Below, piece by piece: positions 5,101 through 21,153 of a DNA stretch of 64,000 nt. Both the position numbers and the translations under genes were made by a program. Positions within the stretch are counted from its first letter, which is position 1. Each line of letters begins with the position of its first letter. The notes beneath the pieces are model-generated. The model had not been told where the DNA came from, did no database searches, and saw nothing but the letters and a program-made list of their open reading frames with translations. Source of the DNA: Takakia lepidozioides (lineage: Eukaryota; Plantae; Bryophyta); assembly GCA_030704615.1 (NCBI GenBank), contig CM060734.1:15066001-15130000 (forward strand), in the 5' to 3' direction.

Positions 5101-6350
5101 TTAAGGCTCAGAATCTACAGCCTGTGCACAAGAAAGAGCAGCTCTGGAAGGTGTGTAGATCACTTGCCTGTTCTCAACGTTAAGACAAGTCAAATCAAAG
5201 GCGAGAGTACATGGTACCAGCAAAGAAACATGAACTGAGCTAGCAAGATGGGGAGTAGATGCATGCTGAGGAAGAAGTACATATTGCCTACCGGGCAAGA
5301 TCTCATTGATGAGATAGGGCCCATCTATCCTTCTCTTAGCCTTAGAAATCTGCTTACCAGCTTGAAATCGCACTCAAACAGATTGCCCAACTTTGAAGGA
5401 TTCGGAATATACTACCTTGCGATTGTAATGCTTGGCCTAGGAGGCTTGAGCAAAATAAATGTTAGACTTAGCAGTTTCACGCAACTGACATCTCTTGGCA
5501 TCCATGGAGAGTAAGAATTTCTCCCAGTTTTCAGGCTCTGTAGCAGAAACTTGCAGCCAGAAAATATGTAAGGGGCTATGACATTTTCTACCATATAATA
5601 ACTCAAAGGGAGATATCTTGGTACTAGCATGATGGAAGTACGATAGGCAAACAACAAAATAGGAAGGGCAATGTCCCACTCATCGATAAGGGCCCCAATT
5701 TTCTCTAGCATCCTACACATGATTTGATTAAAGCGCTCGGTCAAGCCATTGCATTGGGGATTAGAGGGAGCAGTCACAACAAGCTTAGTATTTAAATGGA
5801 ACAAAATAACCTCCATGAGTTGATTGCAAAATTCCGTACCTTGATTTGTGAGGATCTCAAGAGGGCACCCATATCGGAGAATCACCTTATCAAAGAAGAA
5901 TTGTACGACTTCATCACTGTCCTTAGCAACCAGAGGTCGGAGCTCAACCCATTTTGTCAGGTAATCCGTAACTACAACAATGTATGCATGGCCCTTGGAC
6001 GTAGGTTTGAGGGGTCCAACTAGATCTAAGCCAACCTTTGCAAAAGGCTCTGTGACAGGGATTGGCTGTAAAGGCAATGGAGCTTCGATTCTAGGCAGTA
6101 TGGTTTTGGCATGACATGGTACGCATCTTACAATGAAAGCTGAGACATCCTTTACTAAGCCCTTCCAGTGGTATTGTTCTTGTAACCTCTTGACTGTCTT
6201 TGTAACCCTCAAATGACCAGCAAAAATAGATGCATGATACAACTCAAGCAAGGTAGGAACAGCAGACCTAGGAAGGGACTTCCACAGCAGATTGGCCTTC
6301 CAAAACATCAACTTTGAACAAACGCCCTTCACTTTCCCGGTGGATAGGTA
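5101..6350 (-). pseudogene. Gypsy integrase (HHCC zinc finger, rve core, GPY motif), minus strand
   Basis: H..IFAGH...CVPC, GLDLVGPL, TDYLTKW, NQGTEF, NGLTERFN, SPFELLYG, GPYLI. Confidence 0.9.
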
Positions 6351-7217: not shown

Positions 7218-9390
7218 GTCCCAAACAGAACGGGTATGTCGAATGTGACAATCGAACAATCGTTGAGGCAGTCAGAAGCATATTGCATGCTAGAGATCTA
7301 TCCCTTGATCTATGGTGTAAAATAATAGGAATTTTTGGTTGAGCTACAATTTTAAAACCTTTTAGTTCCCTTTTCCATCGATATACTCTGTAATACCTTC
7401 GATATTGCTCCGATAGAGTAGTGTTCCTCGATACTTTGAAAATAGCCGATAGTCTATCCTTGACTGACTGATAGAGGGAATGGATGAATGACTATTTTGG
7501 ATGGATAGAAGAGGTTGAAGCAGTTATAGAAGTTGTTGGAACAACTCTGCTATTTATTTCGTTCATGTGAATCAAATGGTGTCGGATGAGCCGGAGAGGT
7601 GCGGGTTACCCAGTTTACCCAGTTCAGGCACCACTTCTGCCCCTAGGCGGTTAGAATCATGTCCGCTTTACCTTTCTCACTGTGGCTTCTACAACGTATT
7701 GTGATTGTGTGTGGGATTCTATACAATGGTCACCTCACTTATCCACGGGGCTTCATCTGGTTTACTTGCTAGAGTGCTCTTGCGACCTTCTTTACCATGC
7801 TGTCCCGGATTCCCGCTTCTTCCCGAGCAACGCTGTGGAGGCCAAGAGCAAGCCTGCCCTTAAATCGCAACCACTTTCTGAAGGGATTCAGCATCGGCTT
7901 GGCTCTCACCCTTATCTCAACTCCCAGGGTCGACTCAGCACACCGTGAGGTGCTGACGCTAAATCATACCCCACATGTATGCTCTCACCTAGCTGGGAGC
8001 TGGTCGGATATGAGTTTACCTAGCTATGTGCTGCTCGGCCCTTGGCGGTGCGGGCCATCGCCACTGGGCTGGCCAGTCTGTCCCGATCACAGAACAAGCA
8101 GCGCTCTATGTTGGCCCATGCCTGCGCTGGCGCACTCCTAGATGCGGAGCCCGATTTGTAACTCTACCCTCAACACCAAGGTGCGCAGGATGTCCATGCC
8201 AAGTGTGCCTCTTTGCCCGCGGAAGTGCCTCTCCAGGAATCAGCCTGGGCACCACCTACGATTATGGCGACTCAGCTACTCAATTCCCTAAGATACACAT
8301 CGATTATTGGCTGGACTCCCCAGCACTCTAACGACTGTTACTCACAGCGCTCAGCGATCCCACCAGGTCAATCAGATATGTGGGTGTTCCAACCCATACA
8401 AACACCGCTCAGTCCCAGGGAAGGTTCCCTTCACTCTGCACTTGCTTGCTACTGCCTCCAACATAATCCCTACTCTTCTCAATTCTCCGCTCTCACCAGA
8501 TATATACCTATTCCTCTCAGATACCCCCAGGCTACCACCCTGGCTAGTTATGCTCCTGTTTCTCCAGTTAGCTTAAGTATGCATCTGGCTCACCTGCATT
8601 TTATCTTTCGCTGCCCTTCACAGATAAATCACCCGCCACTCTCCAACCCTCCCCCTCATGCCACTTCGAGCACTTTACAATCTATGCATCCAATATATCA
8701 TAACTCATATTGCTGATCAATTCATACCTTCCCCCACAATAGAATCTGCTTCACTCTTGGCCCTCTACTCTCCATGTTATCTCTCCATGCTCAGTGGTGT
8801 TGTTCACAGCCCGAAGCTAACCTGTCTTTTTCTCTCTGTCTTGCAGCGATAGTCCCAGAGGGATCTGCCCCTCACTCTATTGTGACATCCCAAGCTTTGG
8901 TGGCTGCCCATCCTTGGGCCCTCATCCCAACCCACAGTCTCCAGATATCACTCCGGACCACAGCCCCTGCGCTGCTAGTTCCAGCTGGCTTCATCTTCCC
9001 ATCCGGCGACACACACTCTCCGCTCTGACTGATGCCCCTTACTGGATTGCCTTCCTCAACCACGACCTGAAGTCACTCATATCCCCACCTACTCTGGCTG
9101 CTGGCGGATACAATTCCACCCCCCCACAGTATCTATACATGCATGCGAATGCCATGTACTGACCACGACACCACATACAATTTTACTTATTCTTATATGT
9201 CGAGATACCACCCCCCATGTACTGTAAAAAGATTCCCCCTCCGGCACTCTCCATGTTTAAGCCTGTAGATTGTGGGAAATATCTCCACCGCGTATTGTGT
9301 CACAGACAATCCCTCCCCCTTCAGTTGTTATGCTTTACGTGCTTTGTATTCATGTTATCTCACCCCATCACCCTCCGTGAGGGTACTTTA

Positions 9391-9510
9391 CAGCATGATC
9401 CTTCCTACACCCCACAATGGGGTCTGTTATACTCTCCTACATACTCTCTACTGCATGATTCCTTCTCTACTCCACAATGGGGTTGGCTATCCTCTCCTAC
9501 ATACTCTCCT
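9391..9510 (+). repeat. Imperfect 60-bp tandem duplication
   Basis: gcatgat..cttc..ac.ccacaatgggg..g.tat.ctctcctacatactctc occurs twice. Confidence 0.8.
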
Positions 9511-11615
9511 ACTCTCCCATCTCATAGTCTTGATCTCACTCATGATACTCCAAACGGTGGGAGGATTCAGGACCCCACTCCCCTCTCCCACCAGTGCTCT
9601 TCTGTCTTACCACAATACATGTACCAGCCTACCTCCAAGGTCCCGTGGCAGGCTGCCACCAGATGTAATTTACATATACCCGCCGTCAGCAAACTCTTCT
9701 CTGGCTACTCTCCACATGTCAGCTACTATGTAGCACTTCTCCCGTCCTCAAACAAGCAACTGTTATGCTTGTACCTCCCCACTCTATAACGACTCCTCTT
9801 ACACCCAACTCCCTGCCGCAGCAACCAACTATCCCAGTCAACATACATACACTCATGCAGATCCATGGCTCTCCGCTGCTCCCTCCACTCTATACCATCC
9901 CTCTCTACCCCACTCTAGTCTCACACGGGAAAACAATTACACTCCGTTTCTCTTCCTACACAGTCACAATCAATACTGCACCAATTGTTCAACCCCGCAC
10001 AAGCAAGCACACTACACACACAACCAGGTGCTTATTACCAACACAAAGGTTGGCTCGTATATCCCAAATGCCAAGACCCAGTTACAAATGGTTTCCTCAT
10101 ACCCTGCTCTCATACCCCAGCGAGTACACCCCTAACACTCCTATGCAAGACCTAACCTCCCCCACATCCCCATAGTTCCCACCCTGACAATCTCATAGCC
10201 ACTCTGTCATACGCTATTATATCCACCATCGAACACAAAGCACCCAGCTATATCTATGCCTGCATGGCCCACTGCTACATAACGTCCATCCCCACAAACA
10301 CCCTGTACCGCCTTCATCACTCCTGCAACTGCTTTTACTTCCCCAACCAGCACCACTCGCTGTTCCACTCGCGCAAAAGCCAACCCCCCTGATCTACACA
10401 GATAGCGGCGCCACCCCGCCACCCTGCACATGGATTAAGCCTCATAAAACCTCCCGCCATGTTACTACAACACAATCGCCGCCATGGTGTAATTCACCAA
10501 CGGCCACACTAACGCTCATTTGTGGCTCAAGGTGGCTCCACAGTCAATGACACATCCTTTCCATTACAAGCTCCCCACTAAGGCAAGCCGCCACTCTGAA
10601 CGAGCCCCTTCAATATAAATCCTTGCAACAACAACTAACTACGCCTCTCTCCCACTCCTCCCAATTGTGTCACTGCTGCCGCCCACTCAGACGTCCTCTC
10701 ATCCCTCTCATCCCTCTCTTCTCCTAGAGCAGCAGTACGTATGTCTGGCTCCAAGTCCAGCAGCATACAAAAGCGGGCAGGGAGCATTCGTAAGCAGCCA
10801 CGATCACAGGACAATACAACCCGTAGCAAGAAACCGTCTACCATCTCTCTTATAGTACAACAAACTACAATGAATCACCACAAGATCACTACTGTTTCAA
10901 CTGACCACGCCCTGGACTACGCCGATGCCAGTGACATGCATGTATCAGACGAGCAATTTTTTGCTACAGAGCAGGCCTACCAAACTTGCTCTGCGCAGAA
11001 CCTCGCAGCAACTCCGAATGAGCGCACGCCATCCCATCTAGGACCGAGACTTCTTACGGCAACAAGGCCACCTGATCTTGACAGCTGCTCCTCCAGCCCG
11101 CCATAAACGCATCACCAACAGGAGTACTGGCTACGAGTCCAGGTCTCAAACGCGCATCCAGCGCTTTCAATAGCGACGCAGGGAGCTCACATTCCGACCC
11201 AAAAATCAAGAGGCCCAGAGGCGCAAGATCCGTATCACCACCGTTAAAAGCAGGTAGGGCGTATTCGGGCCCTTTCCCGGCGTAATTGGTGTGCAGAATC
11301 GGCCACAACTGCCGATTCTGCCACAGAATCGGTACCGTATAAATACACCGTATAATTCTCATACGGGGAGACATACGTCGTCTTCTCCATCCAGCTACGG
11401 TTTCAGTTTAGAAAATGGTGGAGAAAGCAAGCACACAGCGCAGAAATTCAATGAGAAATTTTGTACAAAATTGAATCAATGTGAATCTGCTCCTGGTTGA
11501 TTATTGCTGTAAAAATGTATATAATCTACAAACTACCGGGATCCAGCATCAATGGAGCACTAGTGCTAACAAGAATGATCTGCATGATCGATTCAATGTG
11601 AATCTGAATCTAAAA

Positions 11616-13398
11616 CTACTTAGAACCAGGATCACTTGGAGCTCCCGTAGCGCCAGAAAGAATCGAAGCTGCAGTAGCTGCATCCGGCACAGTCAACTGA
11701 ATGGTGCAATTCGTCAAATTCCCTTGAAAGATAGTACTTCCAATCGTGCGAGTGTTCGACACATTGTAAGTAGGTCCTGAACGCAGAGCTCCATGAGAGC
11801 GCATCATTTCACTCACCTCATTGAGAACCCCCTTGTCCTCCCAAAAATCCTCATCACTTAAGCGCGAGAGCTCATTAGGAGCACGAACAACAAGGGCCTT
11901 AGAATTCGATACTCCAACAGAATCGGCCAATGCTCAATGCAGAAACCGACGATGGCACATTCGCCAAGTGATCACCAGAAACCGAATCCAGACATTCAGG
12001 TGCACTAGTTGATGAGCCATCGGTTATAGCAAATCCCTGAAGCTTCTTGTAACGCGTGCGCTCCAAAATGTTGCTTCTGCAGTGCCAGGTACTGGTGGAG
12101 ATGTGTCGTGGGAGGCAGCACTAAAATATTCCATCGTGATCTATGTCATAACACATGTAACCCTCCCTAGAGGTGTGGCCTGTCATTCTCATCCCCAGTT
12201 CTGGAGGAACTCCCATTGCATTAAATCGACATATAGTAGTCACCCGTGCACTCTTGTTGGTATAGTTACCATCATGCGCCCCAGGAAGAGCAGCTACCAT
12301 CATTTTCAGCCATTTTGCGATCATCTTTACACCCACTCTTTTCTTTGCGTACTAGACGCCAGGCTCCGTGAGGTTGAGATTACCATTAATTGCTCGCAGA
12401 AAAAAAGGATGAAGAGGATCAAGATCCTTTTCATTCCACTTCGACCAATGAGACATATATGCCTCGAAGGTCTCAACGAGATCTGAATGATTACAAGTTA
12501 CTGATCGCCTCATTTTTTCCGACTGGCAGTGCAGCAAATCAACTTTGTGATTCTTAGTATCCCTCTCATCGAACCTGACATGCTTCCCATTGATATTGTC
12601 CTGGCAAATGGAAAAATCACAATCCATTATGTTGTACAATTCAGTTTGTGCACGTACACATAAATTGTGTATCACGTAGTATGCTACACGCAGCACATAG
12701 CCCCTTCTGTCAGTTCTGCACATCATTGGCAACGCTAATATTTGCTGTCCCATCTCGTGGGTGAGAGGAGAGATAATTTTTCTCTTACAGCCTATTCCCG
12801 CTCTCACAGACCTCTTCACAGCAATTAAGCAAGATATGCACATTTTTTTAAAACGAGGATCATCGATGATCACAAACTTCTCTGCCACTTCACTAGTCCT
12901 GACAGAATCGGCCTCCAATTTCCCCCTAATAATCCGTCCAATAGCGCGCAATAGTGTAACCAGGGTTTCACCGGGATAAAGTTTCCCGTCTTTGCGTTGT
13001 ACCTCCAACATAAACTGAGAAAGCATCTCCACAAGTTCCGGCAGGCGATGCACAAACATTTCTTCAATTGAGTCCATGCAAAGACCACCGGTGACCTTCC
13101 TCCAGTCTTCAAACCGGTTCCTCCCCCAGCGCTCCATATATAGTGATTTTCGTGGCCCTCCCTTCTTCAATTCCTCGACCTCTTCTTTGTCAAGCTGCCG
13201 AAATCCACGTCGGAGTAGGTCGAATTCTTTTGCCATTGTCTCCGCCGTTAGTGAACATTTTGACCGATTATCCCTTTCAAATTTATGTAGTAAAAACTTG
13301 GACCAAAATTTGATTGCCCACAATCTAAAGAAGTATTTGCCTTTACCCATGGTTTTTCCATACAATGTTGAAAGGATCATCAAAATGTGAACATTCAT
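11616..13398 (-). pseudogene. Crypton-like / DUF3504-type tyrosine recombinase with a premature stop
   Basis: FMLEVQRKDGKLYPGETL, DPRF, GIG, LCVRAQTE (catalytic R), ERDTKN (K), PFFL, V*Y (TAG at 12352, likely from TGG), TNKSAR, TGH.S..GY..Y; downstream IFQGNLTNCTIQ tail. Confidence 0.85.
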
Positions 13399-13909: not shown

Positions 13910-14880
13910 TCCAAAAACTTTTGCAGAACGTTGGTCATGTCATTCCGTAAGAGCAAGTGTCATTTTCCCTGTCATGATCTCCATTGTGTCATAGAATGGC
14001 AAAATCAATTGTCGAAAACATGTTCTGGCCGTTGGTAATGCCGACTGGCTGGATGCAGCTTTGTTCATAGAGATAAAGATCTTCTCCTCGTTGAAATATT
14101 GTGAGTCGGTACAAAACTTGTGCAAACTATATCTTTCGTCGAAAGACATTGTCTTCACAAGGTTTTCAAAGTTCAACCGAAGGGCCAACGGAAAATCATG
14201 GTCGTACTCGCACACAGATATAAACTCTTCTGCAGTGAATGCCATCTTTGCACTAAATACAGTTAGAAGGGTTTCCACAGAAAAGTCCTTATTGAGCTCC
14301 CAAGTTCTTCATACTTCTTAGTAGATCAGGGTCAATTTACTCCTGAATTTTCTCCAAGCTATGAATGGCAATGAAAAATCCTTCCTTCCTTCAGATCTCT
14401 TTCACAACGTGCTAAAGGTAAAGCTTCTGGGAACCTTTTGTCCATATGCAATAATCATAAACATAAGAAAGCCAAAGAACGCAACATCGCTCTTTATTCG
14501 TTTGGAAAGAAATGTGGAGTCATTCAAGTGATTTGCTGCAGGTGGGGGATCTGGAGAGCCAAACACAGAGGGAAGGTACTGCAGCCAAAAATACAAGAAA
14601 CACCAATGTTAAAGTATAAAGAAAAAAAACGTATACCTCGACAGTTCTTCAATGAAAACAATTTTAAAAAAAAATCATTAGCCCTGAATTGCTTCCACGC
14701 TGAAGTTAGAAAATTTCGAGTATGACCACCAACGTCAATAGTCTTGTCTTCAAGAACATATATTCCACTGAGGTACTCGACATAGATTGGTGGGATGCAT
14801 ACACCAAGCTCATAGTGTTCATCGAAAAAACTCCGTAATGTGAACAATTCATACCCGGAGTGGTCTACACATACAATCCT
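13910..14880 (-). pseudogene. HECT-type E3 ubiquitin ligase domain (multi-exon, degraded)
   Basis: IDVGGHTRNFL (N-lobe DxGGxxREF), FFGFLM, LHKFCT, LPTARTCFRQLILPFY...KM.LALTE (catalytic Cys motif), FG shortly after. Confidence 0.85.
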
Positions 14881-19978: not shown

Positions 19979-21153
19979 ATGTTTCCTCCAAGCTACGAGC
20001 AATTTAGAATGAGAAGCTCAGCTCGAGGCAGGGGACAGCACAAAGGGCCCACCCGATCACACTACGTGCCAACAGCCCGACCAACCTCCGGAACAGGATA
20101 TTTCCTCGCACACCAAGCTCAATCCGTAGGAGGTGGAGGGGAGAGAAGGATGCAGCCGAACACAATGGAGACAGCAGCGACACCTCACCCGCCTGCGATC
20201 CCAGTCACCCAGCAAGGCCCACCACCAATGCAAGCAACTCAGGATGCACAGGGAACACTGGCAATGTTCACACCTGCAAAACAACAGGAAGAAGTAAACG
20301 AGCTTCAGAAACAGGTGGAAGATGACCTGGGGATGGACGACCTCATTACCACGCAGGAGGCCCTCGGTGGGGACCACCAGATAGTACCGGTGGATATTCC
20401 AGACCTCATCAACAGGGTATCATGCATGGAGGACAACAGTATACTGGTCCACTTCCGTGGTAAGAAAGTAGCAGATCATTTGTGAGAGACTGGGCAATCA
20501 GGCACTTGGGAGGGACAGGAGAGCTCCTGCATCACTTCTGCCATGCCAAGGGGAGGGGCTTTTTCTCGTTGCAATTTGAATCACAAGAGGCCGCTGCAAA
20601 AGCTCTCAAGATTAACCCACACTTACTGGGGTTCAATGTAAACATCTTTCCATGGTCAGCAAAAATGGGACACAAAAATGGAAAAGTGTGGGGACCAAGG
20701 ATTGTATCCCTCCCTTATATTCCAGATCAATATCTGCTCAACATCCCTGACATTGCCAACCACTTTGGATCCTTTCTGGGTTGCTTAGGAGTGTTTGACC
20801 CACTCATGTGCACGGATAGCATCAGGAAGCACCCGGCCTGGAAAAATGCTACAATCGCATCTAGGCTAAATGACAAAGGATTCGCAAAAATGGTGCTGAT
20901 GATGCCAGAGGAAGCCACACTGCCAAACTACGTCAGGCTCCCCATTGATGAAGAAGGCAATTACTTCACAATCAGACTGTTGGAGGAAGCAGCCTCGGCA
21001 AAATGCTTTAACTGTGGGAAAATAGGCCACATCAAAGTAGACTGCCCTTCAGCAGAGAGGAAACGCTCCCCAGGAATAGGAGGGAAGGTGGGGCCACGAC
21101 AGCCACTCAAGTGGTCAACACTGGAGGAAAAAGGAAACCCGACCTCAGGCTGA
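19979..21153 (+). pseudogene. LINE ORF1 (DUF4283-like region plus CCHC knuckle), frameshift near 20482
   Basis: KGRGFFSLQFES...NIFPWS; CFNCGKIGHIKVDC. Confidence 0.8.

Follow-up and report, generated by a model that had tools for sequence, protein, structure and literature searches.

A probable Crypton-type DNA transposon relic in the bryophyte Takakia lepidozioides and its relatives in non-seed land plants

A 64,000-nucleotide stretch of the genome of the bryophyte Takakia lepidozioides (assembly GCA_030704615.1, contig CM060734.1, positions 15,066,001 to 15,130,000 of the forward strand; hereafter the window, to which all positions given without a locus label refer) contains the remains of a tyrosine recombinase gene on its minus strand. 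They extend over positions 11242-13278 and form a 5'-truncated relic with a preserved 3' terminus, corresponding to ~2.0 kb of an element of ~2.8 kb. We consider it highly probable (roughly 0.85) that the locus is a decayed copy of a ~2.8-kb DNA transposon, whose single gene encoded a Cre-related tyrosine recombinase of the CryptonA/DUF3504 kind. Features described below lie on the minus strand unless the plus strand is named.

Reading frames, motifs and lesions of the relic

The central part of the relic consists of two open reading frames (ORFs) in the same frame, one of 348 amino acids (12352-13398) and one of 71 amino acids (12121-12336), and the sole stop codon between them is a TAG at 12352-12354. 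For comparison, the closest copy that could be fetched, L002 from the European Nucleotide Archive assembly ERZ25073694 (which is also the source of L003, L004 and L005), was aligned with the window. The two share 77.7% nucleotide identity across 1085 nucleotides, and outside the element no similarity was found between the fetched loci and the window. At the position of the stop codon the window reads CCTGGCGTCTAGTAC and L002 reads CCTGGAGTGTGGTAC, so that TAG stands opposite TGG and evidently occupies the position of a tryptophan codon. In the protein alignments, relatives including human QRICH1 carry W-Y/F at this position, which marks the TAG as premature. The initial annotation of the locus had described exactly this arrangement, two in-frame ORFs separated by a single TAG where the family has WY, and both the frame check and the L002 alignment bear it out. 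As a separate observation, a short intron apparently lies just before WY in the copy from Diphasiastrum (L001:6834-6890) and in the 2.9-kb elements described below (L005:9220-9388); the window (12340-12370) and L002 are continuous at this place.

The homologous part of the 348-residue ORF (12355-13245) comprises an N-terminal helical core-binding/QRICH1-like domain and the first catalytic half. Motif mapping placed RKDGKLY at 12976-12996, the catalytic R of LCVR at 12652-12654 and the beta-hairpin K of DTKNHK at 12553-12555. According to the alignments and motif mapping, the second catalytic half (12124-12351) carries the K and the R of TNKSAR (K-x-x-R; 12253-12255 and 12244-12246), the H of TGH (12175-12177) and the nucleophile Y of MCY (12148-12150). 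It is followed downstream by a C-terminal tail ORF of 104 amino acids in a third frame (11616-11930) with the conserved motif ..FQGNLTNCTIQL.. and NCTI at 11700-11711. The same tail recurs in P0021, P0036 and L002 and in proteins of Adiantum (..FNNCVINV.., ..MHNCVVNV..). All motifs listed in the initial annotation (R, K, KxxR, H, Y, RKDGxxY and NCTI) are thus present, although the ORF with the NCTI tail is in another frame than the catalytic part. Likewise, most of the long ORF is homologous to recombinases as had been supposed, but its residues 1-50 (13398 to ~13250) match no relative. Translated searches (tblastn) set the upper limit of homology at 13278 with P0006 and at 13245 with P0004, and L002 reaches 13227. 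Since no similarity to any relative was found upstream of ~13245-13278, the first ~50 residues of the long ORF are regarded as fortuitous.

Beyond the stop codon the coding region carries further damage. A gene segment of 84 bp at 12046-12129 is inverted and reads RALQNVASAVPGTGGDVSWEAALKY on the plus strand; by blastn it matches L001 (Diphasiastrum complanatum) and L002 in minus orientation. In the continuous ORF of L002 (7148-8161) it is the piece which follows the catalytic tyrosine, and tblastn aligned residues 128-155 of the C-terminal L002 ORF (L002_C) to 12046-12129 of the plus strand with 82% identity. A small deletion accompanies the distal junction of the inversion, where ~19 nucleotides are missing (a 19-nucleotide gap in the L002 alignment). 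When compared with the continuous L002 ORF, the linker (..YKKLQGF.., 11899-12066) lies in a second frame, and a frameshift near 11950 (11945-11955) separates it from the tail.

The relic does not end with its coding sequence. A non-coding 3' end with GATTCTGC / CAGAATCG motifs spans 11242-11615, contains an inverted repeat at 11311-11331, and resembles L002 (64% similarity) as far as position 8593 of the latter. Its terminus reads ..CCTACCTGCTTTTAACG. In a four-way alignment the sequences diverge immediately past GCTTTTAACG, which sets the terminus of the window copy at 11242, and CGTTAAAAGC occurs only once in the window, namely at this conserved terminus. The initial annotation had thus delimited the coding relic, but the element itself runs beyond the stop codon of the tail to 11242. 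Neither the palindrome motif of L003-L005 nor the 20-mer of their right end turned up when the window was searched; the ends of that subfamily have diverged from those of the window copy, and the shared terminus emerged only in the alignment. The relic has neither the acidic N-terminal region nor the left end of the element. As the window aligns with L002 up to the terminus of the latter, the relic is best described as an element whose right end survives and whose left end is missing.

To judge from its sequence, the window copy is a dead pseudogene with more lesions than the initial annotation had noticed, namely the TAG, the 84-bp inversion, the frameshift and the missing 5' end. Owing to the loss of the left end and to the stop, the inversion and the frameshift, it can neither produce a recombinase nor undergo mobilisation.

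Identity of the encoded recombinase

A word-indexed search with the window ORF retrieved only four close relatives, one of them from Diphasiastrum. An exhaustive profile search built from the window ORF and these four relatives yielded 251 proteins, among them P0018 (E-value 4e-21), P0042 (3e-14), P0072 (1e-10) and P0124 (3e-7), which themselves match the Pfam families DUF3504 and QRICH1 with E-values of 1e-10 to 1e-59. Furthermore, tblastn on the window gave an E-value of 2e-46 with P0022 and of 8e-14 with P0142, a similarity far above chance. The latter protein combines PF12012, PF25561 and PF00589, aligns to positions 13203-12055, and has sponge 'ZMYM2-like' proteins among its relatives. 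A family profile of 39 rows found human QRICH1 in the PDB (5e-5) and, along the stretch with the last catalytic residues (HxxR..H..Y), aligned weakly to integrases such as IntI4 and XerA. In the hidden Markov model alignment, N-K-S-x-R of the family lies under H-x-x-R, TGH under GH and Y under the nucleophile tyrosine. The nearest clusters of the ESM Atlas, with a score of 0.98, are DUF3504/Phage_integrase/QRICH1 proteins of molluscs and cnidarians.

Structure prediction, which had been proposed as a check of the initial annotation, recovered the two-domain fold of tyrosine recombinases in models of both an intact relative and the window ORF. The AlphaFold model of the intact relative P0022, whose core has a predicted local distance difference test value (pLDDT) above 90, matched Cre over ~365 columns and both domains (E-value 4.7e-8, template modelling score 0.60), followed by Tn1549 Int, IntI4, XerA/H and QRICH1. 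The model of the window ORF reached a pLDDT of 86.8. In VIA-align it gave Z scores of 9.6 for QRICH1 (9hjt_H), 9.3 for Cre (207 residues) and 7.2 for the core of human topoisomerase I, with unrelated rows at Z <= 5. Foldseek with the window ORF model alone found no match at E <= 0.001, and its top 20 entries were all recombinases or QRICH1. QRICH1 is therefore the best match among solved structures both by profile (5e-5) and for the model of the window ORF (Z 9.6). With Cre and the type IB topoisomerases the family shares the fold of both domains and the catalytic geometry; it differs in sequence, with 13-15% identity and none detectable beyond the motifs, and these enzymes have other biological roles.

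The window carries R, K, R, H and Y at the aligned catalytic positions, and the first histidine of HxxR is replaced by lysine. Catalytic-looking plant members are marked by I-R-G, S-K-N, N-K-S-x-R, T-G-H and Y, and every one of them has N-K-S-x-R where canonical members have N-H-S-x-R/K. The suggestion that the H-to-K change may be lineage-specific is thus confirmed for the whole catalytic-looking plant set. Lysine at the position of the recombinases' first histidine is the arrangement of the type IB topoisomerases (K220 of the vaccinia enzyme), which makes an active K-x-x-R enzyme plausible.

Taken together, the profile, pairwise, language-model and fold matches support the reading of the locus as remains of a Crypton-like tyrosine recombinase related to DUF3504/CryptonA, as the initial annotation had proposed. 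With the animal CryptonA/DUF3504 proteins the plant family shares the two-domain recombinase with a QRICH1-type N-terminal domain (PMC3212892), the motifs RKDGxxYP, WY and T-N-x-S-x-R .. T-G-H .. Y, significant profile and pairwise matches, and a single recombinase ORF without reverse transcriptase or an additional C-terminal DNA-binding domain. It differs from animal CryptonA in forming a separate clade (support 100/100), in the K for H in HxxR and in scoring below the Pfam cut-offs (see below).

Complete relatives and their end structure

Three loci of the assembly ERZ25073694 contain complete relatives (L003:7716-10626, L004:7716-10645 and L005:7716-10645), which share 2.91-2.93 kb with 94-95% identity and sharp common ends. 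Since these three nearly identical copies sit in unrelated flanks, the family must have been mobile. L002 (L002:5783-8592), 2.8 kb long, belongs to the same subfamily as the window copy, and its ends are laid out in the same way. In these complete relatives the left end GTACTAGAGAA.. is directly followed by a palindrome with arms of 46-52 nucleotides and then by CGTTAAAAGC.., a stretch of 27-32 nucleotides which repeats the right terminus ..GCTTTTAACG in reverse complement. GATTCTGC/GCAGAATC motifs are repeated in both end regions. The joined ends correspond to the inverted internal segment, except for GTACT versus CC at the junction or, in L002, an additional GTA. In a circular form there would be a palindrome with arms of ~75 nucleotides, which in the integrated form is opened within one arm. 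This layout sets the plant elements apart from animal Cryptons, which are reported to be without terminal repeats (PMC3212892).

An internal segment complementary to the joined termini is also the end logic of DIRS1-type elements. Together with the integrase of a long terminal repeat (LTR) element only 5 kb away (5412-6332), it raises the question whether the recombinase belonged to a DIRS/Ngaro-type retrotransposon with its reverse transcriptase part located elsewhere or deleted. DIRS elements encode Gag, reverse transcriptase/RNase H and a methyltransferase; the plant elements encode none of these. The complete relatives measure 2.8-2.9 kb and contain recombinase ORF(s) only. Neither inside them nor in the window relic from 13278 to the terminus at 11242 was a reverse transcriptase found, nor an RNase H or a methyltransferase, and thus the linked reverse transcriptase which would have contradicted the initial annotation did not turn up. 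No LTRs were found at the ends of the relatives. Furthermore, the integrase at 5412-6332 is of the DDE (rve) type, belongs to a gypsy element and lies beyond the terminus at 11242. The neighbours of the family in sequence comparisons are DUF3504/QRICH1 proteins, which DIRS and Ngaro recombinases do not match even at an E-value of 100 (Kojima and Jurka, PMC3212892). A retrotransposon origin is hence very unlikely. Short intact relatives without reverse transcriptase but with defined ends are in keeping with a Crypton rather than a DIRS element.

For Cryptons, excision as a circle and re-insertion by the recombinase have reportedly been proposed by Goodwin. The end layout of the plant relatives suggests that here, too, the recombinase would excise the element as a circle, whose joined ends would complete the palindrome with its ~75-nucleotide arms and repeated putative GATTCTGC binding motifs. 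The circle would then re-insert by strand exchange via a covalent 3'-phosphotyrosine intermediate, for which the catalytic set R, K, K (replacing H), R, H and Y would be used. The window copy lost the left end, the palindrome and ~150 N-terminal codons and still has its right terminus and the greater part of the coding sequence; thereafter it acquired the TGG-to-TAG stop, the 84-bp inversion with its small deletion, and the frameshift. The general Crypton-type mechanism is supported by CryptonF-1_cRei of Chlamydomonas reinhardtii, for which both insertion and excision were observed (PMC9977147). This element is likewise a recombinase-only DNA transposon of the green lineage (PMC9977147). It differs, however, in belonging to group F and in targeting CAYCG, which is identical to its own terminus (PMC9977147), whereas the flanks of L003-L005 showed no shared motif of this sort.

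Several observations weigh against the favoured reading. In Pfam the window ORF scored 19.2 bits for QRICH1 against a cut-off of 30.8 (E-value 0.0013) and had no DUF3504 match, and for DUF3504, with a cut-off of 29.7 bits, the C-terminal ORF of L002 scored 15.5 bits and P0022 24.0 bits. The two short pieces of the window, each searched separately, gave no Pfam match at all. In these searches the window pieces were kept apart with the stop unrepaired, and rows joined with X at the breaks served for alignment and tree only. The Pfam check recommended with the initial annotation thus gave scores below the curated cut-offs, and the profile search showed significant homology to genuine DUF3504+QRICH1 proteins. 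As the pieces fall below the cut-offs, the plant family is better regarded as a diverged sister group of DUF3504 than as a textbook member. Moreover, among the copies of this lycophyte subfamily none was seen to be intact and uninterrupted: L002 carries a deletion of 5 bp, and the coding sequence of L003-L005 is broken up into three ORFs. Recent activity is for this reason deduced solely from the identity between copies. The flanks contain no consistent target sequence, and in L003-L005 no core is common to flanks and ends. Finally, a 7-bp direct repeat, GGGTTTC, abuts both ends of L002 (L002:5776-5782 and L002:8593-8599); it is absent from L003-L005. Such a flanking duplication is not predicted by a pure recombinase insertion model.

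Neighbourhood, phylogeny and significance

All named relatives of the family come from non-seed land plants: the lycophytes Diphasiastrum and Selaginella, the ferns Adiantum capillus-veneris and A. nelumboides, the liverworts Riccia, Marchantia polymorpha, M. paleacea and Calypogeia, and the mosses Ceratodon and Physcomitrium. A maximum-likelihood tree was calculated from an alignment of 35 rows over 437 columns; it had no outgroup and included neither fungal/Glomhopper rows nor any from CryptonF/S/I or DIRS. All plant rows fell on one side of a branch with 100/100 support, opposite the 12 canonical DUF3504 proteins. Nearest to the window copy stands L002 (100/100), and the 2.9-kb element joins this pair (97/91); all of them belong to a lycophyte clade (100/100).

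Nested in the plant clade are also decayed members, which are spliced, apparent host genes with multiple isoforms and without the catalytic residues. They comprise Selaginella LOC9657615 and LOC9653486 (P0030 and P0033 in the tree), Diphasiastrum O6H91_21G046100 (P0048), Marchantia Mp5g04240 (P0023) and Physcomitrium LOC112281767 (P0026), the last of which is fused to a coilin N-terminal domain. By analogy, these genes may mirror the domestication of ZMYM/QRICH1 in animals.

The nearest neighbour of the relic is a host gene. A HECT ubiquitin ligase gene has its last exon at 13943-14278 (Pfam HECT, 1.2e-12), with further exons probably extending to ~18800, and the relic follows its stop codon by ~0.7 kb on the same strand. 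Cargo status was considered for the HECT gene and rejected: the exon is located upstream of the truncated 5' side, and L002-L005 show no HECT-like flank. As no other copy has a HECT neighbour, the gene is regarded as an adjoining gene and not as cargo. Two features of unrelated LTR retroelements lie farther off, a gypsy-type integrase (Integrase_H2C2 + rve) at 5412-6332 and a Gag zinc knuckle at 20482-21153 on the plus strand. The plus strand of 7800-10900 is strongly C-rich (GC skew about -0.3) with overlapping proline/serine-rich ORFs, and a 60-nucleotide tandem pair occupies 9386-9505 in this stretch, just past the right terminus of the element.

The adjoining HECT gene and the apparent host genes with lost catalytic residues and several isoforms would also be in line with a pseudogenised duplicate of a domesticated, recombinase-derived host gene in place of a transposon copy. 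We regard this as improbable, because the window copy retains all catalytic positions, groups with the multi-copy elements and not with the decayed genes, and ends in a non-coding right terminus which dispersed copies have in common and beyond which their flanks diverge at once. In this respect the family resembles ZMYM2/3/4, QRICH1 and KIAA1958 of animals insofar as the plants have analogous decayed, spliced host genes among catalytic copies. The window copy differs from them as a pseudogene of the catalytic, transposon-like branch, which is not a conserved host gene.

Contamination has a candidate source in the Glomeromycota: these fungi colonise bryophytes, lycophytes and ferns, and their DUF3504 elements number in the thousands (PMC13465315). 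Foreign DNA, either from mycorrhizal Glomeromycota with their Glomhoppers or from an animal, might have been misassembled into the plant contig. In the window, however, the relic has retroelements of plant type to either side and is accompanied by a plant HECT gene, and homologues in Diphasiastrum, Adiantum, Riccia, Marchantia, Calypogeia, Ceratodon, Physcomitrium and Selaginella reside on chromosome-scale scaffolds. A single clade (100/100) unites the plant sequences to the exclusion of canonical DUF3504 proteins, and they share K where the fungal Glomhoppers reportedly keep His (PMC13465315). Misassembled foreign DNA is accordingly an extremely implausible source. The Glomhoppers, which are DUF3504 CryptonA elements of Glomeromycota (PMC13465315), nevertheless resemble the plant elements: they are multi-copy, mostly fragmented and recombinase-only, some with introns, and candidate domesticated copies occur alongside. 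They differ by the reported catalytic His and their nesting in animal CryptonA, whereas the plant elements carry Lys and stand outside the canonical group in a tree without a fungal row. The decayed Crypton-type transposon thus remains the reading which we favour for the window locus.

Kojima and Jurka reported Cryptons in 2011 from fungi, animals and stramenopiles, along with one DUF3504 protein from a green-algal mitochondrion (PMC3212892). The Glomhopper paper (2026) calls DUF3504 'widespread in Opisthokonta' (PMC13465315), and chlorophyte algae hold active CryptonF elements (PMC9977147). In literature mentioning DUF3504 we found nothing on plants, and Crypton together with ferns, lycophytes or model non-seed plants returned generic mentions only (Repbase was not covered). 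The view of the initial annotation that Cryptons are not described from land plants hence holds for the literature searched, with the reservation that UniRef already labels a Marchantia homologue 'DUF3504 domain-containing protein'.

On balance, we lean towards a broader proposal, namely that non-seed land plants carry an old and apparently undescribed Crypton-type clade. It would be characterised by a topoisomerase IB-like Lys-for-His exchange and by ends which make up a long palindrome when joined in a circle; its elements would have moved recently in lycophytes, and it would have become host genes repeatedly (in Marchantia, Physcomitrium and Selaginella), paralleling ZMYM/QRICH1 of animals.

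Among the DNA transposons of eukaryotes, no class is understood less well than the Cryptons. The window locus itself adds one dead copy, and its value lies in anchoring the family in a plant contig and in preserving the shared 3' terminus. The literature searched places DUF3504/CryptonA in animals and fungi only, and the plant clade would extend this range to land plants. With defined ends and a conserved active-site variant at hand, the terminal palindrome would be a concrete substrate for tests of excision and insertion. Furthermore, domesticated offshoots occur in the genetically tractable Marchantia and Physcomitrium, and the clade would provide a second, independent set of recombinase-to-host-gene transitions for comparison with ZMYM/QRICH1.

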